Positions 1 through 21,811 of a stretch of 23,829 nt of DNA are shown one piece after another (positions within the stretch are counted from its first letter, which is position 1; every line of letters begins with the position of its first letter). Under the pieces are notes generated by a model. That model had not been told where the DNA came from. It saw only the letters and a program-made list of their open reading frames with translations, and did not search any database. The stretch comes from Amoeboradix gromovi X-113 (Eukaryota > Fungi > Sanchytriomycota): positions 1 through 23,829 of the forward strand of contig JADGIF010000065.1 of NCBI GenBank assembly GCA_018985225.1, written 5' to 3'. The position numbers and the translations under genes were made by a program.

Positions 1-171
1 CATATATTTGAACGAGATGCAGGGTGTTCTACTTTTATTTTGAAGAGGGGATTGAAGGTAATGAAAGAAAATTGGTATAATAGAAGATCTTTTATTAATG
101 ATAGCATTTCCTCTCTATGGAGCACGTTTAAAAACGAGTTAGTCTAGTTTTTATATTTGGTGTACCATATG
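1..171. mobile_element. Right-hand part of a MITE-like TIR element (left end outside window or decayed)
   Basis: About 36-171 aligns by eye at roughly 80% with 21400-21538. It ends in AGTTAGTCTAGTTTTTATATTTGGTGTACCATATG, the reverse complement of the TIR starting at 12522 and 21260. Confidence 0.8.
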
Positions 172-2324: not shown

Positions 2325-4332
2325 ATGCAGCATCAATTAATCGACGCAAAGCATAGCTACCACCCAGCAGTCTTTGAAAATAAACCCTATTCTTTATTGA
2401 GTATTGTTGGAAGCCAGAGTAGTGGTAAATCTACCTTATTGAATGAAATGTTTAATTTACAATTTGATGTTATGCAAGCAACTAGAAAGCAAACTACAAA
2501 AGGTGTTGTACTTGATAAGTATATGAATGATGAAAAGCAAGTCATAGTCTGTGACGTCGAAGGAAGCGATGGTAGAGAACATGGTGAAGAGCAAAAAACC
2601 GAAAGATTGTTACTGTTGTTTGCCCTGTCAGTCTCTGATATTTTGTTGTTTAATCTCTTTGAAAACTCGGTAGGTTTATACCATGGTGCCAACATGGGAC
2701 TAATGAGAATGGTTCTTGAAATATATTACGAAATATTTATTGAACATCACCAAAATGAAAAAATTAAGAAGAAGACTCTACTATTCGTCGTTCGCGACTA
2801 CACTAATACTACCCCTGTGGAAGAAATGCGCAACATACTCTACAACGATATTGCAACTATTTGGTCTAATTTGACTGATAAGAACGTTGATTTATATTTC
2901 GATGTCAACATTCATGCTTTACCCCATTTTAAACTTCAAAAGCTAGAGTTCCAGGATTCCGTCAAGTCCCTCAAGAATAATATCATATCGCTACAATATA
3001 AAGACGAGCTGAGGGTTCATAGTGACTCTTTGAACGACTACATGAGTCGCATTTGGGAGCTAATCACGACCAATAAAGAGTTAGATGTCCCCACGCAAAT
3101 GGAGTTAGTGATGAAGTATAGGGTTCAAAGACTTGGCCAAGAGTGTTTAGACTCATTCCAAATAAACGTGCAACAACTAAAAGCACCTAGTTCATTCGAT
3201 GTCAACAATATGAATCATTTTATCATGAAATCCGACGAATTAGCCAATAAGGCATTTTGTGATTTCAAGTCTATCACTAAACGTGTTTCTATTGACATTT
3301 CTGATGTTTATCTGAACATTAAACAGGAGCTACATTTAAAGATTTTAGAGCATCTGAATTTAAGTACATGGTTTACCAAAATGGTTTCTGAGACTGAGGG
3401 CTGTTCTACTGTTCAGGATTTAATTAAATCAGTTGATACCATTAAAATGGCATATGACGCCTTAATTCCAGTCACTTCGGTATTAGATGCCAGGCATGTG
3501 TATTCCAAATTTAATGATGCACTGAAGAAAGCTAGTCATGCCGCTCATTCGTTGATTCTGGATGATATGGATTTGAACAAGGATTGGCGCTTTATTCTAA
3601 AGTTAAATGTTCAGGACGAATTCAATTCTAGTTTAAATAAAACCTGGGATGCATACAAATCAAACCTATTTGATTCTGGTATTTTAGACTAACTTAGAAT
3701 ACTCTCTACCAATGGATGCTGTTGTTCATCATTTTACTGTCCTGATTCGTAAAATCATCAACTCTTGTTTTACAACCACAGCTATTTTACAATACTTGAG
3801 ACAAACATTGGAGGATGGGTTGCTTTATATCCACAATACACCTCGTATTTATCAAAACAACGATGAGCTACTGCAGGAATTCTCAACTCAACTAGATTTG
3901 TTAAAGTCGCTGTTTAACAAGCTAAAAAAGCCTTCAACCTTACCCAGTTCTAGTATAGCTGTACCAGACGAAATTATGTCATTAGTTCCCTTATACTTAC
4001 CGGAATTAAGTGATGTTGGGTGGACTGAACTAAAGAAAAATGCAGATATTTTGTATATCGATCATCAGCGCAGGATCATGCAGAATAATCAGAAGATCCC
4101 GAAATACATATATTTTATACTTCTGTTGCTGGGATGGAACGAGCTGATGATGGTTATCAGCAACCCAATTTATTTAGTTTTGATGAGTTTTATTGGGATA
4201 TCTGTGATTGTTACCATTCAATTGGGTATGATGCCAATTGCTCAACACATGATTATGGAGGGGTTAACTAAGGCCGTTGAGTTTGTCAAAGACAAAGTGT
4301 ACGAAAAGGCTAATAAAAATAAACAAGACTAG
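2325..4332 (+). CDS. SEY1: SEY1/RHD3 ER-fusion GTPase; exons 2325-3678 and 3698-4332, 662 aa
   Basis: GSQSSGKSTLLN, RKQTTKG, DVEGSDGRE and LLFVVRD in exon 1. TM hairpin IPKYIYFILLLLGWNELMMVISNPIYL in exon 2. A 19-nt intron joins the two ORFs in frame (…FDS-E-YSLPMDA…). Confidence 0.93.
3679..3697 (+). other. 19-nt spliceosomal intron (phase 1) GTATTTTAGACTAACTTAG
   Basis: GT..AG ends and a canonical CTAAC branch motif. It contains the in-frame TAA that truncates the first ORF, and removing it restores the SEY1 frame. Confidence 0.9.
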
Positions 4333-4390
4333 TAAACAGCTTTCTTAAATACAGTTCAATGCTATGTACCTTGAGTGTTTTATTAATATA

Positions 4391-5849
4391 TCATATCTGA
4401 CTGGCCATGCTTAAATAATCATATGCTATCTCTGATATGGCTTCTTTAGCATATTTCTTGCTGCAAAACGTTCGGCTACGTGGATCTTTAAACTTTTGAT
4501 TGCCCACTATAACCAACTGTTCATACAGCGTGCTGCCATGGTGTGGACAAACTGATTCAATGGTTTGGTACTCCGGAAACGATATACCTTTCGAACTGCA
4601 ATACTCTACATAAGCATAAGCTACCATTTAGTAGACTGGCGTACTTCATACGTTCTTGCCTTTTAGCACCCAGTTCATTTTCAAACTCATTGTCCAAATC
4701 GATTGCATCTACACTTTCAATTTCAAAGCCAACTCGCTGCAAATATGACATCACCTTTAAAGATAAAGACCTCTTGGCTTCCTCTAGGGTAGGAAACCTA
4801 AAAGAAGAATAAAACTCAGTGAATCCGATTACGATTTTTAAATTTATTTGCGAAACTTGGTTTACAGTCTCTGTGATCGGCTCTATGACCAACTCGTCTA
4901 AATTCCTCTTTTTCAATAAATTTTCCAACCTTTGAAATGGAGGAATGCTACAAAAGGAAGGATCGTTGTAAAGCTTTTGATAGCCAAGCTCAAATAGCTG
5001 AAGCTCGCACTCCTCTTTTGTATTGGTAGTATTCTCAGATGAAATGGAGACAAGCAAATCACCAAATATTGACAAAGATCCAGAGTATCCTTTATTAATT
5101 TTTCGAACCTCTACTGAATGCAATAAGCCATGTTGATTTATTAAGTCAAAGAACAGCTGGTCTTTCCTTGTAACTTTTAGTTGGGCTTTGGGTTGGATAA
5201 CCTGGACTGCTGGTTTTTTTGATACCCAAGAATTGACAAGTGTTAGTTTGTACTCTTGATTTAACTTAATAAAATTTTGCATTTGTGTTTCACTGAATTC
5301 AAAAACATCTTGGTGCACGCCTTTAATTTGTACTTTGTAAACAGGCCTTAGGATTTGTAAAGCTGTTAGAATTACAAGCCATAATAAATGGTCTTCGAAA
5401 AAGCAAAAAAGCTTAAACGATTCTACAGTATAAAGTCCCTTCATTTTGCTAGCTAGTTGTAAAATTTTATCACTAAAAGCAGGTTGGACACCAAATGCAG
5501 GAACAAGTTGTATTGTCAAGTCTTTCAAAAGATTTATAACAGGGCTATCATTTGCGTATTTCAAGCAGCCCAAAATAACAACTTGGTCAACATAGGATTT
5601 AGACAGCAAGATATAATCACTTAAAAGGCTTTCGACATCTGCAGTTACGTTAAAATGAACCTTGTTATTCAGCTGAAATTGTTCGTAATTGCGGCAAGTA
5701 AAAACTAAATCATAGGCGGCAGTATCAATGGGATTAGAGCCCGCAAAACTAATGGAGCATGTTATTGCATTTTCATAAACAATTAACGGAAAGTTAAAGG
5801 GTTCTAGATTCAAAATCAAAAATGGCTTTTTAACAGACGCTTCCCTCAT
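4391..5849 (-). CDS. Protein with about three tandem dsRNA-binding-like domains; exons 5849-4625 and 4605-4391, 479 aa
   Basis: The spliced C-terminus reads YASLLNEYCSSKGISFPEY…VIVGNQKF…FCSKKYAKEAISEIAYDYL, a typical dsRBD. Two weaker dsRBD-like units lie upstream (…TKEECELQLFELGYQKL; PFQRLENLL…FPTLEEAKRSLSLKVMSYL). Confidence 0.75.
4606..4624 (-). other. 19-nt spliceosomal intron (phase 1) GTAGCTTATGCTTATGTAG
   Basis: GT..AG on the minus strand. Removal fuses ORFs 4557-5849 and 4391-4627 into an intact dsRBD helix 1 (LLN-E-YC). Confidence 0.85.
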
Positions 5850-5892
5850 ATGTTGGAGATTGCACGGAGTTGATTTTTTGTTAACATTTATT

Positions 5893-6297
5893 ATGTATAG
5901 TTCTCACGCGTTGAAATTGATGGAAAAGTACACCAACAAAGATAATAGAAAAGTTAAAAAGCTATCCAAGAAGGGGGGTGCAAAAGAAATTGTTGAGAAT
6001 TCAAAACTGGGCAAACAGATATTTTTTGGGAAAAAGTTAAACACTTTAGGACTAGGACAAATTGACGATGAAAGCTTTGATTTTCTAGCCGATGCTTTGC
6101 GCAAAAAAGATGCAAACCCGTTGTATGGAAAGTTCGTAAAGCATGATGAATCATTGAAAAATATACCATCCATTGAAAAGTTAGAAGAGTTTTCTTATCT
6201 TAGTGGCAAGGGAGGGGTATGCAAAAGCAGCGCGAAACTTCTAAGAATGGAGGCACTTTATGCCAAAGACAAGGCAGAGGAAGAAACCAAAAAGTAA
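5893..6297 (+). CDS. Small basic protein, divergent GPATCH4/Tma23-like nucleolar factor
   Basis: Motifs KKLNTLGLG, LYGKFVK and SAKLLRMEA recall GPATCH4/Tma23 conserved blocks. Start is ATG 5893 or 5920. Confidence 0.55.
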   Translation: MYSSHALKLMEKYTNKDNRKVKKLSKKGGAKEIVENSKLGKQIFFGKKLNTLGLGQIDDESFDFLADALRKKDANPLYGKFVKHDESLKNIPSIEKLEEFSYLSGKGGVCKSSAKLLRMEALYAKDKAEEETKK

Positions 6298-6316
6298 ACT
6301 ATTGTATAAAGCAAAT

Positions 6317-6643
6317 TTACTGAGGACTTACAGTGTCTTCAAACTTACTGGCTAATTTAATGATATTATGTCTAATTACTCTTGGATCCAAATCAAGTTG
6401 ATTCTTCAAATCTGGAAGCTCATTCGGGTTTATGTCAAAGGTCATTGCCCAATAGAAACCATGCTGGTAAGCCTGTTGATGAGATCGCATAGTATAAGGG
6501 AGTTCTCTAGTCCTCAAATCATCCAGTTTCCTAACAACTCCTTTCTTTTTTATTACTTGGGTTGCCAAGTTCTTAATCAATGAAGCGATCTTAGATTTGT
6601 CTATGTTTATCTTTGAAATAACCAGTAATTCATACAATGGCAT
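6317..6643 (-). CDS. MRP17: Mitochondrial ribosomal protein bS6m (Mrp17)
   Basis: MPLYEL start, GVVR, LPY, G.YW.M.FD and LDPRVIRHNIIKL match the S6 family. Confidence 0.9.
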   Translation of the reverse strand: MPLYELLVISKINIDKSKIASLIKNLATQVIKKKGVVRKLDDLRTRELPYTMRSHQQAYQHGFYWAMTFDINPNELPDLKNQLDLDPRVIRHNIIKLASKFEDTVSPQ

Positions 6644-7057
6644 ATTGTTTCCTCCTTATATGGGACAGATTTTGCGAAAATGTCGGCAACTAGGACTACA
6701 AATAAATCCTTCGAGACACTAACATAATAACAACCCATTCACTTCCTCTACTTCGAGCTTCGTTTTTCGTGCGAAGTCAAACAACTATACAAGTCTTTTT
6801 TTATTTTCATAGCAACGATGTTATCCCTGTCAAAGATTAGGATTCCTTGTTAAAGCGTCCAGTATTATTAAGCTTCTTTTACGTACTTCTACAAACCTGT
6901 TGAGATGAATCTTCGAATAATCTCCTAGTAAATGGCTTATCTTTTATCTTGCAGTTGATCTTCTCACTCTCTAACCATTGTAGCACAAGATAGGAGCATA
7001 AAAAAGACTAAAAACAAAGCTATTTGAGCATTACTTTTTACTGTTGCTTCTATCAAA

Positions 7058-8923
7058 ATGATTGTAATTAAAATATTTGGTGTCAATCCACTCGATAAAA
7101 ACACCCGCAAGGGCGTACGTCCAGTCATAATTGGGACCATTTTCCCGAATTCTGTCCTAAAGAGGATAACACAAGGGAACTGGATGACATCACCATTTGA
7201 TCGAATAACAACATCGTCTTCTAAAAACAGGCGAAAAACTTTGGAACGGAACTTAGAACTTAAAGGCAAAAAATCTAAAATCAAAGACAGAAGAGACAAA
7301 AGAAAATTTGGCCATCTTACAAACTCAACCGGTTTAACTCATGGCGGAAAGCCTTTAGACTTTGACAACATGGAAGATGTGAATTCTGAATCAGATGATG
7401 AAATGATAGATTTGAATGATCCGAATGTTCAAAGAAAAGAGACATTGAACGAGATCATCGCAAAATACAAGTTAGAAAGACAAAAAAAGCAACTTGAAAA
7501 AAGATTGCTAACTACTGCGGTTAAAAGGCTCGACGAAGAATTCAAAGAGGTTAAGCGCTATGTTAAAAATGCTGAATTTGTTGAAATATTACCAGATGAC
7601 TATGATTTAAACTTGCACAGGCTTACAGGTGATAAACGGGCAATGGCTGTTGAGCGTACCAAGTCAGTTGCAGAATTAATGATACAAGAAGCAGAAAAAA
7701 TTAAGTCTAGTAGCCTGGAAAACCCTGCAGACTCAGTAGCTGTTGGCGCTCCCATGCCCGAGAGCTTAGAAGGAATAGAACTCACCTACTCTAGTAATTA
7801 TACTGGCACTATAACAGGGCCTACCGAAAAGTCTGTATTTAATGTTGAAGAATCGGGCAAGCTGTCCTCCGATTCAGATACTAGTAGTTTGGAGTCTTTT
7901 CAAATGGCTGAAAATGCTCCAGATCTGGGCGACGGCTTCCCAAGCTCATTCAAATCTTTCTCTAAGATCATTAGTTCATCCGACAATCCTTCTCTTTACA
8001 TACGCAAGTGCAGAGTACTCTACTACACTTCCCCAGAACATCTGAAGCAATTGTTAGACTATTTACTGTGTCTAGTAGCATATAATCAAGATATTGTACC
8101 TTTGATAGACTCAGTTTATCCTCATTTATTCAGTCTAGTGTATGACTACAAATTGGATGCAAGCAAAAGACTACTAGTTATATTTAAGCAGCTTTTAGCT
8201 AAAAATGGCACCATCTCATCTTTGCTATCAAACAACGCGCTGATGTTGTTTAAATTTTGTACAAAAGTGTACAGTAGAGATTCTACGGTTGTAAGTAGTA
8301 TACTTTCAGTTTTGAGTCAATACCTGCGTTCATCCGTAGAAAGCAAGCTGTGCGTAGAGCAGGGTGTAAAAGCGGTTACCTTGATATCAAATTATTGTAA
8401 TTCAAACTTTGTTTACTGCCCTGAAATATATGTGTTTGGATTGAGATTTTTTAAAACTTTGCATGGACTAAGTTCTGCAGCTACAAGTGCACTATCGTGC
8501 TTTCATTTTGTTTCCATTTCAGAGTATGAGCCGAGTATTATAAGGCTATTCTCAAACATTCCGTTGGAGCATCCTTGTCGCGAGTTGTACTATTCTATTC
8601 TTCCAGAATTCAGAGAAAGACTGGACGTATCTTTAAAGCAAACACTAAATTTACAATCTCACAAAAAAGAGATGATGAAAATGCAAATACCTGTGTTTGG
8701 AGAGATGAGTAAAACTAAATCCGACACAATTAAGTTGAAGAAACGTTTGAGGAATGAAGGAAAGAGTCTTTTGAGAAACATACGAGCTGATCAACGTTGC
8801 ATTACTGGAAAGAAAGTTGCTGATATAAAGAGAAAAGACAAGGAATACGCTAAGTATATTAATAAGCTGACAGGTGACTTGGCACATGAAAATGGGGAGC
8901 ACAGAAGAAGCACAAATGAATAA
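7058..8923 (+). CDS. NOP14: Nucleolar protein 14 (SSU processome), shortened and divergent; true start may be ATG 7184
   Basis: SPF…RRKTL…KIKDRR..KFG, LTHGGKPL, EIIAKYKLERQ, RLDEEF, DDYD..L..L..DKRA…ERTKS, and C-terminal KLKKRLRNEGK…RNIRAD. Confidence 0.88.
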   Translation: MIVIKIFGVNPLDKNTRKGVRPVIIGTIFPNSVLKRITQGNWMTSPFDRITTSSSKNRRKTLERNLELKGKKSKIKDRRDKRKFGHLTNSTGLTHGGKPLDFDNMEDVNSESDDEMIDLNDPNVQRKETLNEIIAKYKLERQKKQLEKRLLTTAVKRLDEEFKEVKRYVKNAEFVEILPDDYDLNLHRLTGDKRAMAVERTKSVAELMIQEAEKIKSSSLENPADSVAVGAPMPESLEGIELTYSSNYTGTITGPTEKSVFNVEESGKLSSDSDTSSLESFQMAENAPDLGDGFPSSFKSFSKIISSSDNPSLYIRKCRVLYYTSPEHLKQLLDYLLCLVAYNQDIVPLIDSVYPHLFSLVYDYKLDASKRLLVIFKQLLAKNGTISSLLSNNALMLFKFCTKVYSRDSTVVSSILSVLSQYLRSSVESKLCVEQGVKAVTLISNYCNSNFVYCPEIYVFGLRFFKTLHGLSSAATSALSCFHFVSISEYEPSIIRLFSNIPLEHPCRELYYSILPEFRERLDVSLKQTLNLQSHKKEMMKMQIPVFGEMSKTKSDTIKLKKRLRNEGKSLLRNIRADQRCITGKKVADIKRKDKEYAKYINKLTGDLAHENGEHRRSTNE

Positions 8924-8932
8924 TAAACAATT

Positions 8933-9436
8933 TTATTCAGAGTTGATAGTAGATGCACTTCCAAGGTCAGATTCAAAGTCTATCCAAGTGATTTGAGATT
9001 TTTCAAGGTTTTCGGAATAAAACGAGTATTCTCTAAAACAGAACCGGTAGATCTTGAAAGTAATAATGGTAAGAATAACCATTCCAAGGTGATTAGATAT
9101 TAAATCATAGTAACTAGGTCTTTCATATCTATTAGATTCTAAACACTTTAAAATTGCATCAAGTCTGAAAATTTGGACAATATTTATAAGTGCATACGCT
9201 GCCGCTAGAATCTGCATAACTTTTAAAATTCTTTCTCCTTTCAGGCGATGTACATTTATAATTATGAATCCTGACATTCCAGTGGTAATTAAAATTATTG
9301 CTGAGAATATCTCCAAAGCATTTAGTATACATTTGTTCTGAAGCAGTGAAAATCCTCCAATTGTAACTATTGATCCATTTAAAATGTATAATGATTGCTT
9401 TATATCGCTTATATCAATTTCATAATTTTTTCTCAT
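8933..9436 (-). CDS. Hypothetical membrane protein, about 4 TM segments
   Basis: Open frame with four hydrophobic stretches. First ATG is at 9436. AATAAA overlaps the stop, as in the neighbouring genes. Confidence 0.65.
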   Translation of the reverse strand: MRKNYEIDISDIKQSLYILNGSIVTIGGFSLLQNKCILNALEIFSAIILITTGMSGFIIINVHRLKGERILKVMQILAAAYALINIVQIFRLDAILKCLESNRYERPSYYDLISNHLGMVILTIITFKIYRFCFREYSFYSENLEKSQITWIDFESDLGSASTINSE

Positions 9437-10013
9437 TTCGAATCTGACCGTGGCTTGCAAATCAAAACTTTAAGTAGTTGGGTGCTATGCAAGCTGCAAA
9501 GAAGCGTGAAGTAGCTTACTGCAGGTACAAACAAGACACATCCAGCTCAGGTAGCTAAGGTTTAAATAACTAAATGGAAATCTAGCGCTCAAAGTTAATT
9601 TTTCAAGCAACTGCTCAATTCTGGACTTAGCATTGATAAACTCAAGAAACTTACCACCTACATTTTTTGGGACACAAATATTCTTGAGTTTACTTGGTGA
9701 CACACTTTAGTAGACTAGGTCTCATGTTTGACTAAGCATGTAAGAAGATAAAATTTATTGGTAGATGTATCAAGTATTGTGTAAACAGACATCCAGACCT
9801 ACCTAGCACAGACCTGGTCAAGGATCAACAGGCGCATCAATATTGTACCAAGTTTAGCAGGGTAGTAACACTATTATAAGCATAGAAATTGACGTGCATG
9901 GCTTTCCGATACTATTGAAAACACAACGCAGCAATAAAGATCATAGCTGTATTGACAGTCTCGTGGAGTAGCTTTGCAAAGTTTACCAATCGGAGCTTAC
10001 TTGGATACTCTCC

Positions 10014-11078
10014 ATGGAACAAGAAGAAAAATCACTCAAAACTACTCAGTCCAATGATGAGGCAAGTCAAGGGTCCAAATCCGTCATGGTTGATGCCAAA
10101 ATTAGCACAGATACAGCTTATGCTCACTTTGCTGAGTTTGCACCACTGCTGTCTTTGGAAAATGTACATTTTCCGTCTCACTGGCAACCAGAAGCAATTA
10201 TGTTTGCTGGTGCCTTTGCGACTGGTGTCCAATTCTACGATACAAAATACGATGAATACTTTGAATTTACCACAAGAGCTCACAGGAAGCGCTTAAAAAC
10301 ATTCAGGATCAATTTTTCGTTAAAGGAAAAATTCAGAGCTTCTTCTCCTTTAATTGATTTGATACGTCATTCTTCTTTTTATTTGGCTTTTTTTTTCTTT
10401 TTGGGTAGCTTTTTTTTCTTTGCAGCAGAATTGCTAAATTATTTGGACACTTCACATTATCTTGTTTTAATTCTCCAAACAATTAAAGGAGCTTTTTTCC
10501 TTTTAGGTGCAATCGCTGGGTTTATAGAAGTTATTGATCCTCCAACTCTTGTTCAGCTCGAGAAGGAATTTCTCTCTGGTGTTAAATACTATCGCAAACT
10601 ACACCTTCCCCTGAAAGCCAAAGCCGAGCATATAATGAAGAACACCAGGAGTTTTGCCAATTTCAGCTTGCATCAGCTTGCGTTTTGGTCCTCTTCTTAC
10701 CTGCTAAGTGCGGTGTGTTTATTAACAACTGTTGATATTGCAAATTTTGTAATATATCGCAAAGATCTTTCCAATGATCTTAGTTTAAAATTCAACTTGG
10801 AGGTGGTGTTCTTTGTGGGCTCTATTTTGTTGCTCATTGCAAACTTTATCAAGTTTATTGAAATAAGTCATTTCATGAAGAAGCCGCTACAGTACAAATC
10901 ATTTGGCTACTGGGCTGTTGTATCTTTTCTTATTTTAAGTGTCGGGATATTAATCGGTGCGTCAAACGTCTTATTTAGTTTTACGAGTAACAAAGTACAA
11001 GAAGGTTGTTTTATAGCAAGCGCTGTTTTTACTACTATCGGATCTAGTCTTTTGTATCTAGAGCTGAAGTTTACATAA
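10014..11078 (+). CDS. Multi-pass membrane protein with YrhK-like repeats
   Basis: 354-aa ORF with about 6 hydrophobic segments and repeated F.(L/V/I)GS motifs (FFLGSFFF, FFVGSILL, TTIGSSLL). The family call is tentative. Confidence 0.7.
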   Translation: MEQEEKSLKTTQSNDEASQGSKSVMVDAKISTDTAYAHFAEFAPLLSLENVHFPSHWQPEAIMFAGAFATGVQFYDTKYDEYFEFTTRAHRKRLKTFRINFSLKEKFRASSPLIDLIRHSSFYLAFFFFLGSFFFFAAELLNYLDTSHYLVLILQTIKGAFFLLGAIAGFIEVIDPPTLVQLEKEFLSGVKYYRKLHLPLKAKAEHIMKNTRSFANFSLHQLAFWSSSYLLSAVCLLTTVDIANFVIYRKDLSNDLSLKFNLEVVFFVGSILLLIANFIKFIEISHFMKKPLQYKSFGYWAVVSFLILSVGILIGASNVLFSFTSNKVQEGCFIASAVFTTIGSSLLYLELKFT

Positions 11079-11183
11079 ACAGAGGATGGAAAAATTAATT
11101 ATTGTGAACTTGAGCTTTTTAAATGCAATTAATTAACTCAATAAATCACTTTTTGCACAAAAACGGTAATCTTTATCAAGGAA

Positions 11184-11355
11184 ACATGTTTAGGAGCCCG
11201 CTAGCTGAAAGGACTGATAGCTAATCGACTACCGTTTCTCCTATGAGACTAAATTCGAGCTTAAGCAACAAATAAAAAGCCTGAGCGGCAAGAAAGTGAC
11301 ACGAAAGTAAATATGAAGTCTGAGCCCTTGCCGCAAGTGATGTTAAGTTTCTGAG
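11184..11355. ncRNA. Candidate structured RNA (two hairpins; snoRNA-like boxes), unassigned
   Basis: Stems TAGGAG/CTCCTA (11191-11196/11238-11243) with inner TAGCT/AGCTA, and GCGGCAAG/CTTGCCGC (11285-11292/11327-11334), in a locally GC-richer spacer. Confidence 0.3.
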
Positions 11356-11385
11356 TACGTCCCCGAATGATTATGGTTAATTTTT

Positions 11386-12300
11386 ATGACTAAATTTGAA
11401 ATTCGTGTCCCCTGTTCAAGCGCAAATCTAGGTCCTGGATTTGATGCATTAGGTCTTGCGCTCTCGTTATACCTATACGTTGAGGTTCAAGCACTTGACT
11501 CAGACGAGTTTGAAATTGTGATATTGGAGGCTACTCAGGGTCTGTCCTTGGAACCTGAAGTCAATTTGTTGACACAAATGATAACCCAAACATTAACTAG
11601 ATACGGGAAGAGCCCTAAAAAGAAGATCAAGTTGAAAATCAAATCTGAAATACCATTCGGAAGCGGGCTTGGCTCAAGTTCAACAGCTATTATTGCAGCT
11701 GTAATGATTGCTAACCAAGTTGGAGACTTGCATTTGAACAGGGATGCTTTGCTTGACATATGCTGCGAAATCGAAGGGCATCCTGATAATATTTGTCCCG
11801 GATTTCTTGGGAATCTGACTGTCTCTGTTTACTCCAAACCATGCATATACCTTACAATCTCGTTTCCAGAGGAGATAAAAATCATGGCTGCTACTCCATC
11901 CTACCAGTTGCCTACTGAAAAGGCAAGGCAAGTGTTGCCAAATTACTATTCTAGGGAAGATGTCGTGTTCAACATTCAGAGAGCTAGCGCTTTGCCTCAT
12001 ATATTAAGCAATCCTTCATATTGGAATCGTTTAAAAGATGTCTTGCAAGACAAAATTCATCAACCCTTTAGATTATCTTTGCTACCTGGTTTCGAGACTG
12101 TTCTTAGAATCGAAGAAGAAGGATGCCTAGGCGCATTTGTGAGTGGCGCAGGCCCCACTGCTTTAATACTGTATTTGAATAATGAGGAAAAGATTGAACA
12201 GTTTGTGAGAGATGCATTTTCAAAACACGGCTTTACAACGACAGTGAGGCATTTAAAAGTAGATGTGCATGGGGCCTTGCTAACAATGAAAAGTCAGTAA
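11386..12300 (+). CDS. THR1: Homoserine kinase
   Basis: VPCSSANLGPGFDALG, GHMP loop IPFGSGLGSSSTA, EGHPDN, DKIHQPFR, SGAGPT. Confidence 0.97.
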   Translation: MTKFEIRVPCSSANLGPGFDALGLALSLYLYVEVQALDSDEFEIVILEATQGLSLEPEVNLLTQMITQTLTRYGKSPKKKIKLKIKSEIPFGSGLGSSSTAIIAAVMIANQVGDLHLNRDALLDICCEIEGHPDNICPGFLGNLTVSVYSKPCIYLTISFPEEIKIMAATPSYQLPTEKARQVLPNYYSREDVVFNIQRASALPHILSNPSYWNRLKDVLQDKIHQPFRLSLLPGFETVLRIEEEGCLGAFVSGAGPTALILYLNNEEKIEQFVRDAFSKHGFTTTVRHLKVDVHGALLTMKSQ

Positions 12301-12521
12301 ATTGTTTTCTTAATTTTATTACACGGTACCCTGTAAAAAGTAGGCTACTTTTTACAAAATTAACATATGGGACACCTGATGTGATTTCTAGACTAACTCT
12401 GAAAATCTGATTTTGAGAAAAATCCATTTAAAGTTGAAAGTTCAAATGTGAAAATTAGACCAAGTCAATTGACGAATAAAACTCGTTTAATTTACAACTT
12501 CTTTTATTATTTCTAGACTAA

Positions 12522-12586
12522 CATGTGGGACATCAAATATAAAAACTGGACTAACTTTCTGTAACAACTTGGAACATTATTTCAGC
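12522..12586. mobile_element. Nested left end of the 21260-type MITE
   Basis: TGGGACATCAAATATAAAAACTGGACTAACTTTCTG…CATTATTTCA is nearly identical to 21260-21318. Confidence 0.8.
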
Positions 12587-12656
12587 TTTATGGTGAGAGA
12601 TCAGGTTGGCAACAAAGGATCACTGACAAAGTAATTTCGCCTATTGCCTAGGTGAA

Positions 12657-12751
12657 GAAATATGGGACACTACTGTGAAAACTTCAATTGGCTTTATCTC
12701 GTCACCCGCTTTTTACCCCTAGTCTAGTTTTTACAGAGCATGTCCCATATC
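12657..12751. mobile_element. About 95-bp mini TIR element flanked by a 7-bp direct repeat
   Basis: Perfect 10-bp inverted ends ATATGGGACA (12660-12669) / TGTCCCATAT (12741-12750). AGGTGAA occurs at 12650-12656 and 12752-12758. Confidence 0.65.
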
Positions 12752-12994
12752 AGGTGAATTGAATAAATTCTTAGTTACTATTTTATTTTTATCTGATTTA
12801 CAAGAATTGGTCTACTTTTTTCATTTGAAAATACAATTCAAACTTCAACTATGGATATTTCAACCGATAATAGACACACTGATTCAAAATTAAGATTTTT
12901 GAACAGTTCAAGTTCTAACGAACCTGAAAACACTACTTTTAGGATTTAGGACAATTTCGAGCTAGTCTGGAAATCATATAGGGTGTCCCATATG

Positions 12995-13660
12995 GCAGCC
13001 AATTTCAGAAAATGTCCCTTGTCTAAATCCGAGTATTCTTGGATAGATGTGTTAGTCCTATAATATTCCATTAAGCCTTTCTGAATATAAAAATGCACTG
13101 AAAATATCTCATTCAAAATAGCTTGGCTGATTAGCACTTACCATATGTTCTGACATCCCAACTGGCAACCATTTTCATATTCTGTCTTGATGTTTGTAAT
13201 GTTCGCACTAATACTTCAATATCGTCTTTTCTAATCTTTTGCAACTGCTCTTTTTGTCTGGTTCTCGTTTCTTCGTTGTGTTGGGCATGATGAATTAATG
13301 ACGGTGGGTAATCTATTGTGATTTCTAGGTGTTCCTGCTAATTATAAATGAGAAAATTTTGTCAGAATGGTCTAAAATACTTTATCACTTGTTGTTAGGC
13401 AAGACAGGTTACTGTTGCTTTTCTACTCGTTAAATGACAAGAATTTCCAATGACAATTACTCCGCCAAAGTGATTCCTCACGCTTGGACTTGCCTGAGAC
13501 GAGCCAAATTGGCCTTTTGGCATATTTTAGCAGGTCTTGTACTACTTGAGTATCCAGTTTGTTGTTTTACATCTCTTTTTGGAGTGGGAGGAGCGTAGTG
13601 AACTTCAGTGATGTTAAACTAGTCTGCATTGGTTTTATTACTTTGATAGCTGAAATTTGA
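12995..13660 (-). pseudogene. Decayed unidentified coding sequence running into the TIR element
   Basis: Protein-like minus-strand stretches (…DTQVVQDLLKYAKRPIWL…; QEHLEITIDYPPSLIHH…KDDIEVLVRTLQ…) are broken by stops and frameshifts. No family recognised. Confidence 0.3.
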
Positions 13661-13863
13661 TGGTGCAGCGGCCTAACGATCCCTTTCTTTTCATTCAAGG
13701 GTAAATAGATAACTTAAAAAAGGTTCGTTGCGCTTGCTGCTCAAAATTTGTACAGGTTAGGTACTAATCTTTCGGTTTTTTTGTGAAGCCTATGAGCCAA
13801 TCAAACAATAGACTTTATTATCATTTATTACCCACATTCCCCCAACAGCAATTCCTATTACAA

Positions 13864-15297
13864 ATGTTCTACTATTTAATTTGTAGTGCTTTCGAGCAAA
13901 GTAATATTAATCAACGGCATACCCAAATCATAGATGTAAACGATTATATTCTACAAACAGAAAAAGGTTGCATTAACCCAAACATCGCCGACTACTTATC
14001 TACATATACCAATATAACTAACATTTTTACGAACCATATATCGTTTACAAGTTCTCTGGACTCCAGTACCCTTTCTCAATTGTTAAGTAAACTAGACTGC
14101 AATTTGAATTTTAGAAAACAAATAAAATTCATTCCTACAGAGCAGGTTCAACAAACTTTTACAGCTGGCTGGTATCTTGATAGAATAGACCAATACAACC
14201 TACCATTAGATGGAAAATATCACTTTAATTTTACAGGGAAAGGTACAAACATATATATTATTGATAGCGGGGTGATTCTAAATAACAACCCTGAGTTGCA
14301 AAATAGAGTTAGCATGCCATGGAAGGCCAGCCATATTAACGAGACTACTGATGACTGTACTGGGCATGGGTCTCATATCGCATCAATAGCGGCAGGGAAA
14401 AATATAGGAGTTGCTAAATTAGCAAATGTTCTAGTTTTAAGAGTTCTTGATGGCTGCAATTCGGAAGAGGCTACTGCCAGAGAAGAAGACATAGTAGCTG
14501 CTCTGACTTGGCTCAGAGATAATATCAAAAAACCAGCAGTCATAAATATGAGTTTAGGACCGCAAAAAGGAAATGTGTATGAGTCTTCTCCCGCTATTGA
14601 TCACGCTGTGAAGGTGCTAATTTCTATGGACATTCCGATAGTAGTTGCTGCAGGAAACGATAATACCAATGCTTGCAAAGGTAGCCCAAGTAGTGTCAAA
14701 GAGGTGATAACTGTAGGTTCAACAGATTCCAATGATTCAAGAAGTGGATTTTCCAACTATGGAGACTGCGTTTCTATATTCGCACCTGGTAGGGAGATAT
14801 TCGGATACACTATTGATCCTAAAGTTAGCATGTCGTCCCCTGGCTATATATCAAAAGACGGCACCTCCCAATCTGCTCCACTTGTCACTGGAGCTATTGC
14901 TTTACTATTAGAAATGAATGGGGCTATTTCCCTGATGGAGTTGAAAAAGATTCTTTATGCAAACTCTCCATTTGTTCAGAATTCAAAAACTCCTGTCGCT
15001 AACGCTAGACTTCTTAAAATCACCTTTAACTCTGGAGGAACTGGAGAGCGTATTAACATAGATGACAATGTAATTCAATCTTTAGATAGTCGGCCATGGT
15101 TTGATAGATACAAAATTCATATAATAGTAGGACTCTCTGTATTCTCGGCTGTTTTAATTATAGTTTTGATTTGCGTATTCTTTAGTAGGCGCAAAAATAA
15201 TCAGCGAAATAGCTTCATTCAAAAGAAAACTTTCCAGGGCAGTAGACCACCTCCACAAACAATAACAAATCTAAACCAAAGAGATGAGAGCCCTTAA
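13864..15297 (+). CDS. Subtilisin (S8, proteinase K-like) serine protease with C-terminal transmembrane anchor; alternative ATG at 13792
   Basis: Catalytic motifs IIDSG, GHGSHIA and GTSQSAP; also WYLDRIDQ, INMSLG, VAAGND. TM segment IIVGLSVFSAVLIIVLICVFF followed by RRK. Confidence 0.92.
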   Translation: MFYYLICSAFEQSNINQRHTQIIDVNDYILQTEKGCINPNIADYLSTYTNITNIFTNHISFTSSLDSSTLSQLLSKLDCNLNFRKQIKFIPTEQVQQTFTAGWYLDRIDQYNLPLDGKYHFNFTGKGTNIYIIDSGVILNNNPELQNRVSMPWKASHINETTDDCTGHGSHIASIAAGKNIGVAKLANVLVLRVLDGCNSEEATAREEDIVAALTWLRDNIKKPAVINMSLGPQKGNVYESSPAIDHAVKVLISMDIPIVVAAGNDNTNACKGSPSSVKEVITVGSTDSNDSRSGFSNYGDCVSIFAPGREIFGYTIDPKVSMSSPGYISKDGTSQSAPLVTGAIALLLEMNGAISLMELKKILYANSPFVQNSKTPVANARLLKITFNSGGTGERINIDDNVIQSLDSRPWFDRYKIHIIVGLSVFSAVLIIVLICVFFSRRKNNQRNSFIQKKTFQGSRPPPQTITNLNQRDESP

Positions 15298-15315
15298 CTA
15301 GTAAAGCAATTTTAT

Positions 15316-16186
15316 TTACTGCACTTCGCTTTGATCTTCTTGCATTAAGTTTTCTAGCTTTGATAGTTTTTCAGTTCTGTATTGCTCATAGAGTATCTCT
15401 TGAGTAATTTCTTTCAAGTCAGTCAAGTGAGAGCTTAATAGGCAATATTTCAATCTCACAAAGTCACAGTGTTCCAGATTATCAATCTGTACAGTCCCCC
15501 ATGGATATTCTCTTTTATTAGAGAGTGAGCTCGATACAGCAAACGGCAGTAAGTTCTAAATTAAAAAAGGGTACTTTTAATTCCTTGTTTTCGCCAACTG
15601 TGTCTTCGTCGTCCTGATGGTGATCGTAAGGAAAACTAAAGATAGGAATATCATAAAATTCAATATCACTCATACACCTTTTTTTCAATACTAGTAGTTC
15701 TTCTAGGGTCATCGAGTCGGATTTTCCGATAACTGGTATGACGTTTATTCGATGGCTTAGTAATTTCATAAATTGAATATCCATCTCATGCAACCCATGC
15801 CCACCACTAATAAAATACAAACAAACATGTACCCTATTATCAACAAACTTCGGGTTTCTTTTAATTCTAGATTCCTCAGCTAAGAAATCGTCATATTGCT
15901 TTTCAACGTATTGCATTATTTGGTCAAATTGAGCTGTATTATCAATTGCATCTCCAAATCCGGGTGTATCCACTACGCTCAGACTAATCTTTAATCCATC
16001 TTCCTCCAGCTCGGCATGATATGGAGCAATCTCAAGAGTCGGGCTTAGATATGCCTGACGTTCAATTACTTTACTTCCCAAACAGTTTATGAATGTGGAT
16101 TTTCCTAATCCACTTCTTCCTACCACTATCATATTGAATTGAAACACCTTCCTAGCATTTCTACGCATTCTAAGGTCCGTGGCCAT
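15316..16186 (-). CDS. CDC11: Septin, Cdc11/AspA-like; exons 16186-15575 and 15555-15316, 283 aa
   Basis: GRSGLGKST, DTPGFGD, EESRIKRNPKFVDNRVH, GKSD. After the 19-nt intron it continues NLLPFAV…REYPWG…HCDFVRLK…SHLTDLKEITQEILYEQYRTEKL (septin unique element). Subgroup assignment is less certain than the family. Confidence 0.9.
15556..15574 (-). other. 19-nt spliceosomal intron (phase 0) GTACCCTTTTTTAATTTAG
   Basis: Removal converts ELK-VPFFNL…stop into ELK-NLLPFAV…RxYPWG, restoring conserved septin motifs with no missing residues. Confidence 0.93.
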
Positions 16187-16267
16187 GATTCTTCGTGTAT
16201 CAAAAAATATCGATAAAGTCTTAAATTGACCTGCAAAGTAAGATGATTATATATAACAAATTTATTA

Positions 16268-17568
16268 CTACCATGAGATGTCGTCCGTCTTTTTGCTGGT
16301 ACCAACACTTACAGGCTCCTATATTACCTAACAAATACTTCTTTTTTTATTACGTCGTCATGAATAATTAGCGGTTCCTTCAGCTCATGCTGAGTTACAG
16401 GGCTTTGAATTTCTATGTTGTTTTGCTGCTGTATTGGTAAGGGATGACCAATGTCATCAATTTGCTCATCTACGGCGGAAATAACTACATGCTTACCTTT
16501 CTGTTCTTGATGCTCCCCTAGCTGTTGGTCATTAGTAGAAAAACTGACATTCCTGCTTGAATTGCTCTTTAATGGGTTATGTGGCATTTCCTTTCTATTC
16601 TGATTTAAAAGCTTCAATTCTTGAGTGGAAATATCCACACTTACTCCCTCTCTGCTCTCAGGCTCTACAGATTCTTTCTTGAGTAATTTCAATTCTGCCG
16701 AACTCAAATCATAAGCCAAGTTTTTACTGCTTTTGCCCTCCAAACTCTTTTTTCTCAAAAGCTTCAACTCGTTCTGGCTTAAATCGCTCTTTGCTGAATT
16801 AGTGCGCCCGTCTGATGGTAAATGGTTCAATTCGTATTGCTGAAGAGGTGCATTGACCTGGTTGACTTCCAAATATCTTAAATCTGCAATTTCGCGCTGT
16901 AGCTCTTTGGTCGCCAATACCTGCTGATCAAGTTGTTGTTTTAATAACTCATTCATTTGCAAAGTATGTTGTAGCTTGCTGTTTTGCTGTTGGAATGTTT
17001 GTGGTGGATAACTAGCAAGTTGCTGGCTATTAGATAGCAGCTGTTTGATGTGTTCCAGCTCGTACAAATATGGATCTTTTTTCATCTGAAGTTCCAGCAC
17101 ACTTGATTTTACTTCTAGCAACTCTTGATGAATATTTTCCAGCAGATACTGATTTTGAGGTTGCTGCTTATAGAGTTGTTTGTAATTGTCATGCTCTCTT
17201 TGCAGTTTATATTGTAGTTGTTTGTAGTATTCCTGATTCTTTAGCAACTCCAAAGAATGTTTATTCTCTACGTCCTTTAACAAAGATTGATAGTACTGCT
17301 CTAGATGCTGGATATCGTAATTGACGGTATAACTCGTTTTGTATTCCTTGTATATATCTGACAAATCTTGAGATGTAGGAATTAATTCACATTCAGATTG
17401 AAGTGTGTTTAGGGTAGCTACCAAGCCTAATTTCTGCAGATAATTTGCTATGATGCTGGTCAATATTATATCCTCCTTATTTAAGACGGTCTTTTCGATC
17501 CCTTTGTATAGTTGGGATTTTACCTGAGAGCGAATCTGATTGATTTGATGATTTGAATATTGATCCAT
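16268..17568 (-). CDS. LisH + coiled-coil protein, OFD1-like centriole/basal-body protein; exons 17568-16339 and 16318-16268, 426 aa
   Basis: N-terminal QIRSQVKSQL, LisH-like SIIANYLQKLGLVATLNTLQSEC, and a Q/E/L-rich coiled coil. The spliced C-terminus …TDDISW* resembles the acidic-Trp tail of OFD1. Confidence 0.65.
16319..16338 (-). other. 20-nt spliceosomal intron (phase 0) GTATTTGTTAGGTAATATAG
   Basis: Same GTA…TAAT.TAG layout as the other three, and it contains the in-frame TAA. Splicing adds EPVSVGTSKKTDDISW* whose stop is followed by AATAAA (16261-16266). Confidence 0.75.
16561..16785 (-). repeat. Three 75-nt (25-aa) coding repeats D(L/I)SxxELKLL
   Basis: Asp codons start at 16785, 16710 and 16635, an exact 75-nt period: DLSQNELKLL, DLSSAELKLL, DISTQELKLL. 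Confidence 0.8.
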
Positions 17569-17799
17569 TGTTGAAACTTGGGAGCCAAATTGAATTTTAA
17601 AGATCACGATTTTACTTAAGAATTTGCAAAGATATACCTTGCCATCAACAAGTATAGACTTCAGTTTTCAGTTGACATAAAAAAGCGATTTTTCTTCTTT
17701 TCTTAGACGCCAAACGCCTACATTAAATGTGAATAAATTCAGCCTCTCTCAAATGTAGACAACTTTGGTAAGCAAAGTTTTAACACGTTCTTACCTAAA

Positions 17800-18725
17800 T
17801 AGCTAAAATGGGACACGGATTAATACCTCAATGATCTTGGTGATCACATGACAAACATCTAAACTGAAGAACATTATACGGCTATTGATGTGATCGCATT
17901 CAAAACAAGTCACTGTTAATTGCGCTCCACTGATAATGAATAAACTTTGTTCATATAACTTGCATTGCGTATCAATCTTTGTTTGAAGCTGTAATGGCCA
18001 AGTAATTGAGTTCTCTTTTCTCATAACGATTTAATTTCTTAATCATATCTTGCGCAGCAAACTCTGCCAAAAAATCACTGGAAACTTAGGAAGTGATTTG
18101 ATAACGTTATAGTGTGAAGTTCTAGACAGATCTTCGACAAGTTAATACATGCACGCTTTCTCACTTTCTTTTGACAATGAAATACTTTCCACGAGATAGC
18201 AATATCTTTGTTAACCAGATAAGTCTAAAATGTTGTTTTTCGGCGTCTTTCTGCATTCATAACCGTGAAGCGAAACTGAACCATTGATGCCACAAGCTAT
18301 TTGAAAGGCACAAGCTCCAGGTTCCAGCGTTACATTATTGGTAGGAGTGTCTGCTTGGTTTTTGCAGATAGCTCCCTACTAGCTGTAGAGTAATACTAGT
18401 TGATTCAGGATTAGAACAATCTTTGTAGCTGAATTATGATACTTCAGATGTTCTTTTGATTTCAGTTCACCTCTCCCCAATAACTTGGAAATGGTCTAGA
18501 ATGATGGCCTTCACCCTTCCTATAATCCCTACTCAGTAACTTCACAGTGTGGTGGAAGCGTGAGCAAACTTTATGACAGATCATTGGCTTATCCGCTTCT
18601 CTGCGATAATTCTCGATTTTCCCAGAAATCAGGACTTTTAATGTGAAGTGCACTTGATTGCTCTTCAATCTTTCCAAATGAGTAAAAATGCGGTACGAAT
18701 GGCAAGAAACCAAGATTCTTTTCAA
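17800..18725 (-). pseudogene. Decayed unidentified coding sequence(s)
   Basis: Protein-like minus-strand segments (e.g. SDFLAEFAAQDMIKKLNRYEKRELNYLAIT) are interrupted by stops and frameshifts. No family recognised. Confidence 0.25.
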
Positions 18726-20839: not shown

Positions 20840-21259
20840 AATTTATAATAGAAAGGTTTTAGAATGTTCGAAAAATATTTATGATATATTACGAAAAATA
20901 GACAGGGTGACATTGAAAACAATCTCATAGGGTCCAAGATTACTCCAGTTTACCCACTGTGGTGTGGCTGTGGATTGAAACGTAAGCACGCACTACAACA
21001 ATTTTCACCTTAGAGAAAATTTAATAAGCGATGCTTAAGGATCTTGCATGTAAAGAAGAGAAAGTAGCAACAGCAAGGTATCACTTAGATCTCAGGAGAT
21101 AAGATTTGTGATAATACTACATGATAAATACGTTAAGGATTTAATTATTGAAGGAAACTGTTTAATCAACATATATACCAAGCAAGTCGTTCCAGCGGTA
21201 TTGCAGTAAAAGAGCTCGGTAGCAGATAATGCCAAAATTTGTAAGTCTGCAGAAACGAA

Positions 21260-21534
21260 TGGGACATCAAATATAAAAACTAGACTAACTTTCTGAAATA
21301 GTTTGAATCATTATTTCAAGTGTGTGTCAACCGATAGTAAATTAAATTAAATTAATCTTATTGGTTGCACCTTTTGCTTAGACACTCAGAGACCCTATAT
21401 ATTTTAAAGAGGGGAATGACATTAATGAAAGAAAATTGGTTTAAAAGAAGGACTTTTATTAATAATAGTATTTCCTCCTTATGGAGCACCTCCTTTAAAG
21501 ACGACTTGATCCAGTTTTTATATTTGGTGTCCCA
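21260..21534. mobile_element. Complete 275-bp MITE-like element
   Basis: TIRs match at 23/25 (TGGGACAYCAAATATAAAAACTRGA). The left end is repeated at 12526 and the right half at 36-171. Confidence 0.88.
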
Positions 21535-21811
21535 AATGTTACTATTGAGCTGGAGCTACTAAATACTATCAACACACTGTTGGGAGTAACAAAGAATGTT
21601 CAGAAGTTGAGAGTTGTAGTTGCTGAAGTTAGTCAGCTAGAGAACCAAAGAGCTACTTGTGTTAAACGCAAGGAAGAGCTATTGGTGTTGATGAATTTAA
21701 TCAGGTAAGATGCCAACAAATTGGAAAAAATTGTTGATGATAAATTATGGCCATACTTCAAATATATTGAAATGTTGTACTAGGTTTTACAATAAAAGCG
21801 GGTTTTATTAC

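Follow-up and report, generated by a model that had tools for sequence, protein, structure and literature searches.

Spliceosomal introns at the lower limit of size are known from a few distant lineages, being 18-21 nucleotides (nt) long in nucleomorphs, 15-16 nt in heterotrich ciliates and 16-17 nt in Mikrocytos (PMC10245619). Median lengths are 22 nt in myxobolid myxozoans and 22-27 nt across myxozoans and dicyemids (PMC13644364), and introns of the microsporidian Encephalitozoon cuniculi measure 22-76 nt (PMC3629993). We analyzed contig NODE_67 of Amoeboradix gromovi (Sanchytriomycota), hereafter the window (23,829 nt), in which four genes are each broken by one GT..AG segment of 19 or 20 nt. 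A. gromovi is a parasite of the alga Tribonema, and Sanchytriomycota is sister to Blastocladiomycota. An initial annotation of the window had taken the segments for miniature introns, citing nucleomorphs and heterotrichs as the main known cases, a list to which Mikrocytos and the myxozoans have to be added. With their counterparts in related genomes, the segments belong to a sample, not a genome-wide count, of 28 introns at 14 sites in four species, drawn from ~110 kb. Our preferred reading, to which we assign a probability of about 0.9, is that these are major-spliceosome (U2-type) introns of ordinary chemistry whose length has been reduced, across Sanchytriomycota, to a functional floor of ~19 nt.

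Each of the closest described systems shares part of this design. Stentor coeruleus and other heterotrichs likewise have uniform, tiny, AU-rich GT-AG introns with a weak donor (PMC9505925), and their branch A, the tenth base in 15-nt and the eleventh in 16-nt introns, is equivalent to -6 counted from the 3′ end. These are free-living ciliates, however, whose introns form a 10-nt loop and carry little branch consensus, whereas the introns of the parasitic sanchytrids, at 19-21 nt, would form a 14-16-nt loop and contain a recognisable heptamer in the TACTAAC register. The nucleomorph of Bigelowiella natans has the same size class and a compact genome (PMC10245619, PMC2483917), but is the remnant nucleus of an endosymbiont with >800 introns in ~300 genes, while the 10.5-Mb sanchytrid genome is an autonomous nuclear one with about one intron per four genes in our sample. 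Mikrocytos mackini is also a parasite with a very narrow size range and conserved intron sequence; it differs in being a rhizarian with 224 introns, a strongly reduced spliceosome and no identified U1 (PMC10245619). E. cuniculi, a holomycotan parasite, has short GT-AG introns with a branch motif near the 3′ end, but only 37 of them, with a strict donor motif and low splicing levels (PMC3629993, PMC6349667); since microsporidia stand on a separate branch of the tree, the sanchytrid case is independent. Myxobolid myxozoans and dicyemids are parasites in which introns have shortened convergently, at retained ancestral positions and with reduced splice motifs, but they are animals with longer medians (PMC13644364). 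Yarrowia lipolytica, a fungus, lacks a polypyrimidine tract and holds its branch motif at a constant 2 nt upstream of the AG, which likewise places A at -6, but its introns are long, with a strong donor, a strict branch motif and no size compression (PMC2483917). Fixed branch-AG spacing is shared with the anchored branch-point type of Yarrowia, Trichomonas and Giardia in general, whose strong donor is absent in sanchytrids. The independent origin in a mitochondriate fungus that had been proposed is supported.

Four interrupted genes and their counterparts in related genomes

Removal of the segments lengthens the open reading frames (ORFs) from 455 to 662 amino acids (aa) in the SEY1 gene, from 222 to 283 in a septin gene, from 430 to 479 in a gene with a double-stranded RNA-binding-domain-like end (dsRBD-like) and from 414 to 426 in a LisH/coiled-coil (OFD1-like) gene, and matches to the Pfam Septin and Sey1 domains are found to either side of the breaks. 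Frame repair alone is weak proof, as many other GT..AG segments could mend frames by chance. The motif common to the four segments fits just these among the 456 GT..AG 19-21-mers on both strands of the whole window, where A at -6 alone occurs in 34%; this motif was drawn from the same four segments, and relatives are the real test.

Database searches were run exon by exon. In ENA metagenomes and a second EukProt genome (probably Sanchytrium tribonematis), they recovered ORFs that terminate close to where the window ORFs do. Contigs of the relatives (L-numbered, for example L001, L003, L005, L007 and L009) are syntenic with the window, group with it in one clade in septin and SEY1 trees (support 100/100) and represent at least three species besides A. 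gromovi. To compare them we wrote a pair aligner that works at codon level. At a flat cost it may excise any GT/GC..AG segment of 10-250 nt from either of the two sequences, or it may introduce a frameshift, and it has neither a length prior nor a branch prior. It picked exactly the SEY1, dsRBD-like and septin segments that had been proposed, and all four sites carry an intron in two or three relatives. Lengths at the SEY1 site are 19 nt in the window, 21 in L005, 19 in L007 and 26 in L009; at the dsRBD-like site, 19, 21 (L005) and 19 (L007); and at the septin site, 19, 19 (L001) and 20 (L003). Removing GT..AG at a conserved site restores the conserved protein whatever the length of the segment. 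In the particular case of the OFD1-like gene, the lengths are 20 nt in the window, 21 in L001 (in frame, with two stops) and 19 in L003 (with a GTC donor), and the last exon is entered in a different frame in each of the three species. The aligner left the ends of this intron open, the flanking protein being poorly conserved: removals of 14, 17, 23, 35 and 38 nt keep the frame too, and the motif favours 20 nt. The four segments are thus, with very high probability on this comparative evidence, real spliceosomal introns, placed where the initial annotation had put them and spread across the lineage as it had supposed (Table 1).

Table 1. Positions of the exons and introns of the four interrupted genes in the window
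Feature	Position	Strand	Remarks
SEY1/RHD3 GTPase gene, exon 1	2325..3678	+	Pfam RHD3_GTPase, E=1.7e-61
SEY1 intron, 19 nt, phase 1	3679..3697	+	Probable branch A at 3692
SEY1 exon 2	3698..4332	+	Pfam Sey1_3HB, E=9e-22; 56% identity to relatives
dsRBD-like gene, exon 1	4625..5849	-	37-42% identity to L005 and L007 orthologues
dsRBD-like gene intron, 19 nt, phase 1	4606..4624	-	Probable branch A at 4611
dsRBD-like exon 2	4391..4605	-	Conserved in three species; Pfam dsrm, E=0.056, profile 8-66 of 66
Septin gene, exon 1	15575..16186	-	Pfam Septin 2-203 of 280, E=2e-63
Septin intron, 19 nt, phase 0, ancestral position	15556..15574	-	Probable branch A at 15561
Septin exon 2	15316..15555	-	Pfam Septin 219-278 of 280, E=3.5e-21; 85% identity to L001
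LisH/coiled-coil (OFD1-like) gene, exon 1	16339..17568	-	65% identity to L001 orthologue; Atlas LisH_2 clusters 0.81-0.89
OFD1-like gene intron, 20 nt, phase 0	16319..16338	-	Probable branch A at 16324; ends inferred from motif
OFD1-like last exon, 16 codons	16268..16318	-	75-87% identity among three species

The unspliced SEY1 reading frame meets a stop within the branch motif. The gene is named as NODE_67.p3 in Supplementary Data 1 (A. gromovi sheet) of PMC8371127, which also places a subtilisin on the contig. Near 3183 (aa ~286) the window SEY1 is without a stretch of 17-29 aa that is present in frame in L005 and L007. The L009 intron (3656-3681), the longest seen, is followed by five extra codons and has the same branch geometry. 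For the dsRBD-like gene, whose orthologues were identified by synteny, exon 1 has no family match in Pfam, a protein search returns the gene itself only, and a PDB search gave nothing of note. A C-terminal dsRNA-binding domain is probable in this gene, its name being a lead drawn from the weak dsrm match and an Atlas lead. The OFD1-like identity of the gene at 16268..17568 is likewise a lead; LisH matches its L001 orthologue at E=0.006-0.018.

Anatomy and probable splicing of the introns

Lengths are 19 nt in 16 introns, 20 in six, 21 in five and 26 in one, so that 27 of the 28 form a near-uniform class below ~25 nt in the ~110 kb sampled. All begin with GT and end with AG. T at -8 and A at -6 are present throughout, the 26-nt intron included, giving a fixed branch-to-AG spacing with no polypyrimidine tract, and position -5 is always a pyrimidine, as is -9 in 27 introns; -10 is A in 21. 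The T-8, A-6, Y-5 and TAG pattern holds in all four window introns as first described, and GTA and TAG, invariant there, are each found in 27 of the 28 (one intron ends AAG). The donor is mixed at +4 and never has G at +5, and shows no strong six-base consensus. When a TACTAAC-type heptamer is scored with wobble pairs allowed, the mean is 6.0 of 7 if its branch A is set at -6, and no other register exceeds 4.3, which makes this A the probable branch nucleotide. The distance from the 5′ site to the branch is 14-16 nt, once 21, and varies between orthologues; the predicted 14-15-nt lariat loop is widened accordingly. Judged from these alignments, the fixed quantity is the branch-to-AG distance and not total length, because orthologues shift by single bases and one intron reaches 26 nt. 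The suggested ruler is therefore an overstatement.

Within a 19-nt intron, positions 1-8 form the 5′ site region and 9-15 the branch heptamer, directly followed by N-TAG, and the pairing footprints of U1 and U2 abut without overlap. That U1 and U2 could hardly bind at once, as the initial annotation suggested, is a conjecture. Most likely, the major spliceosome would remove such introns by the usual two steps, each intron consisting of three adjoining recognition elements. Positions 1-8 would hold the weak 5′ site, which is GTA without G at +5; U2 would pair with the TAYTAAY-like branch sequence (-11 to -5), bulging the A at -6; and the 3′ AG would be chosen at a fixed distance from that A (N-TAG). 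Recognition may depend mostly on the branch element and the fixed AG spacing; the donor would be the closest GTA lying 14-16 nt upstream of the branch, which would set a lariat loop of 14-16 nt. The length peak would then most likely mark a functional floor against which deletion bias drives the introns of a compact parasite genome, and not a ruler, as has been argued for mikrocytids (PMC10245619). Among splicing proteins, SNRNP40, K12662 and K11093, the last of which we take to be U1-70K, are annotated in the A. gromovi proteome, in the fifth of the published annotation examined; six others are not in that fifth, where absence is uninformative. No small nuclear RNA (snRNA) was found in the contig DNA examined.

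The narrow peak at 19-21 nt, where 27 motif matches stand against ~6 expected, could also mean that a remodelled spliceosome measures the distance from 5′ site to branch, without U1 or with U1 acting only sequentially. Such a spliceosome would explain why G at +5 is missing from all 28 introns and has a precedent in Mikrocytos, which has no identified U1 (PMC10245619). Against it stand the single-base differences between orthologues, extending to 26 nt, and the annotated U1-70K-like protein (K11093). Furthermore, Stentor splices still shorter introns with all snRNAs present (PMC9505925). We regard this alternative as unlikely; it differs from the preferred reading in the spliceosome only, not in the introns. 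A more far-reaching version is similarly doubtful as a whole: about a thousand introns of 19-21 nt, the shortest in any fungus, with ongoing gain and loss between species and a rebuilt recognition of the 5′ site, in which, with no G at +5, U1/U6 pairing has co-evolved or is bypassed and the branch-AG unit alone defines the intron.

Retention of the segments in mRNA, by frameshifting, hopping or read-through, or their excision by a non-spliceosomal enzyme, is very improbable. The evidence is from DNA only, and two 21-nt orthologues in L005 are in frame and stop-free and could be tolerated unspliced, but orthologous segments elsewhere would demand +1, +2 and stop read-through across species. All three lengths modulo 3 are found at the OFD1-like site, which would need three recoding events and makes frameshifting very unlikely. 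Furthermore, recoding would have no use for a consensus of GT, branch heptamer and AG, and the septin site coincides with an annotated Allomyces intron. The view that indels from assembly or amplification, or lesions of a pseudogene, account for the breaks, with GT..AG fits arising by chance, is close to refuted. The genome does derive from whole-genome amplification, and many GT..AG segments mend a frame by chance. However, independent metagenome assemblies of other species show breaks that share the codon and the motif but differ in length, both exons are conserved, and homologues are gap-free after removal. The three lengths modulo 3 at the OFD1-like site rule out assembly indels, the alternative that the initial annotation had itself raised.

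Several points weigh against the preferred reading of shrunken U2-type introns. The 14 sites sampled are close to the four genes chosen, and introns that lie near gene ends or in poorly conserved genes may escape the aligner. The branch nucleotide rests on a consensus, and short microsporidian introns splice poorly (PMC6349667). A search for RNA sequencing runs listed none, and a spliced sanchytrid product was not found in protein or metagenome searches: no full-length spliced septin or SEY1 is among the homologues found, a septin scan of JGI metagenomes gave no match, and a scan with exon 1 of a relative's ADP/ATP carrier gave distant organisms only (68-78% identical).

Further sites, intron history and other window features

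The pair aligner placed more introns of 19-21 nt in a peroxidase-domain gene, EMP24, PCI, MyTH4, glycine decarboxylase and FHA genes and one unnamed gene. In the window, 12 genes could be compared with relatives and none required an additional intron, which bears out the earlier statement that no longer intron is needed for these 12 of its 16 genes. A motif scan over 110 kb gave 27 matches at 19-21 nt and ~2 per length elsewhere, a partly circular result; two matches outside the pattern-defining set mend frame breaks in Sec61-alpha and in the ADP/ATP carrier, which after intron removal aligns without gaps to 16 distant homologues. Outside the four chosen genes, intron density in the relatives is ~1 per 5 kb, which by rough extrapolation from these other species would give about one or two thousand introns in 10.5 Mb.

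Two 21-nt introns of L005, at 11439-11459 (+) and 12354-12334 (-), are in frame and stop-free, and gene callers read through them (P0130). Their full motif is kept, which suggests that they are still spliced. They also share an 8-nt internal word.

Candidates that were rejected include the longer "introns" of the aligner. Insertions of 51-102 nt in SEY1 and the peroxidase-domain gene are in frame and found in one species only, and other long ones ran beyond stop codons into neighbouring genes. A 19-mer at L003 10702-10720 fits the motif but lies inside conserved septin exon 2, is coding and has no pyrimidine at -9; the short motif alone therefore does not define an intron. Other candidates in the window (for example + 18390) lie within no recognisable gene.

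Some intron sites differ between species within the sanchytrid clade. The FHA gene is intron-free in the window, and L005 and L009 have 21-nt introns (8198-8218 and 831-851) at different sites, corresponding to window 1121 and 905; one of the two ends AAG. These sites may represent recent gain or loss of tiny introns. Glycine decarboxylase P has a 20-nt intron in L012 (5492-5473, -) and none in the L013 orthologue. For the septin gene, Allomyces javanicus has an annotated 72-nt phase-0 intron at the same codon as the sanchytrid intron, which has therefore shrunk from an ordinary one. The A. javanicus septin has six introns (72-224 nt), the Blastocladiella emersonii septin three (59-226 nt) and Coelomomyces SEY1 four (132-229 nt). 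By this comparison, the sanchytrid line has evidently lost most ancestral introns and shrunk at least one that it kept, in septin.

Dispersed non-coding repeats with inverted ends of ~35 nt are located at window 36-171, 12362-12994 and 21251-21548, with arms such as 12364-12399/12959-12994 and 21251-21284/21510-21543. They resemble a miniature inverted-repeat transposon family and occupy gaps of the window that are absent in relatives. A 166-aa ORF at 8939-9436 (-) has no Pfam match, and its stretch is absent in L003 between Nop14 and the next gene. About 1 kb at 17700-18720 holds short broken frames only, with one repeat-end copy near 17808, and is possibly a decayed element.

Novelty and significance

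We found no literature on sanchytrid introns, or on 19-21-nt introns in other non-microsporidian fungi, in a search that covered few subscription journals. The system is less new than the initial annotation had implied; A at -6 is itself known from Stentor (PMC9505925) and Yarrowia (PMC2483917). The sanchytrid introns add a new, independent case to the known class of ultra-short, uniform spliceosomal introns. It is probably the first from non-microsporidian fungi, and its introns are shorter than the smallest reported for E. cuniculi (22 nt). Stentor and Yarrowia have converged on the same A at -6, which suggests that there is a shortest workable spacing from branch to AG. As the sister phylum has ordinary introns at shared sites (72 versus 19 nt in septin), shrinkage can be traced intron by intron, and comparison with Blastocladiomycota tests the idea of deletion bias meeting a functional floor.

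Published sanchytrid proteins were predicted with TransDecoder directly on genomic contigs, and introns are not discussed in the main text of that study (PMC8371127). Since TransDecoder on genomic contigs cannot model introns, the published protein set has no intron models. Ten window ORFs are identical letter for letter to EukProt entries, four of them truncated first exons read to the first stop, the blind spot that the initial annotation had foreseen. Public sanchytrid proteomes are thus cut at every such intron (in four of the 16 genes here) and their protein counts inflated, and the truncated models may affect claims about gene loss and lineage-specific genes.

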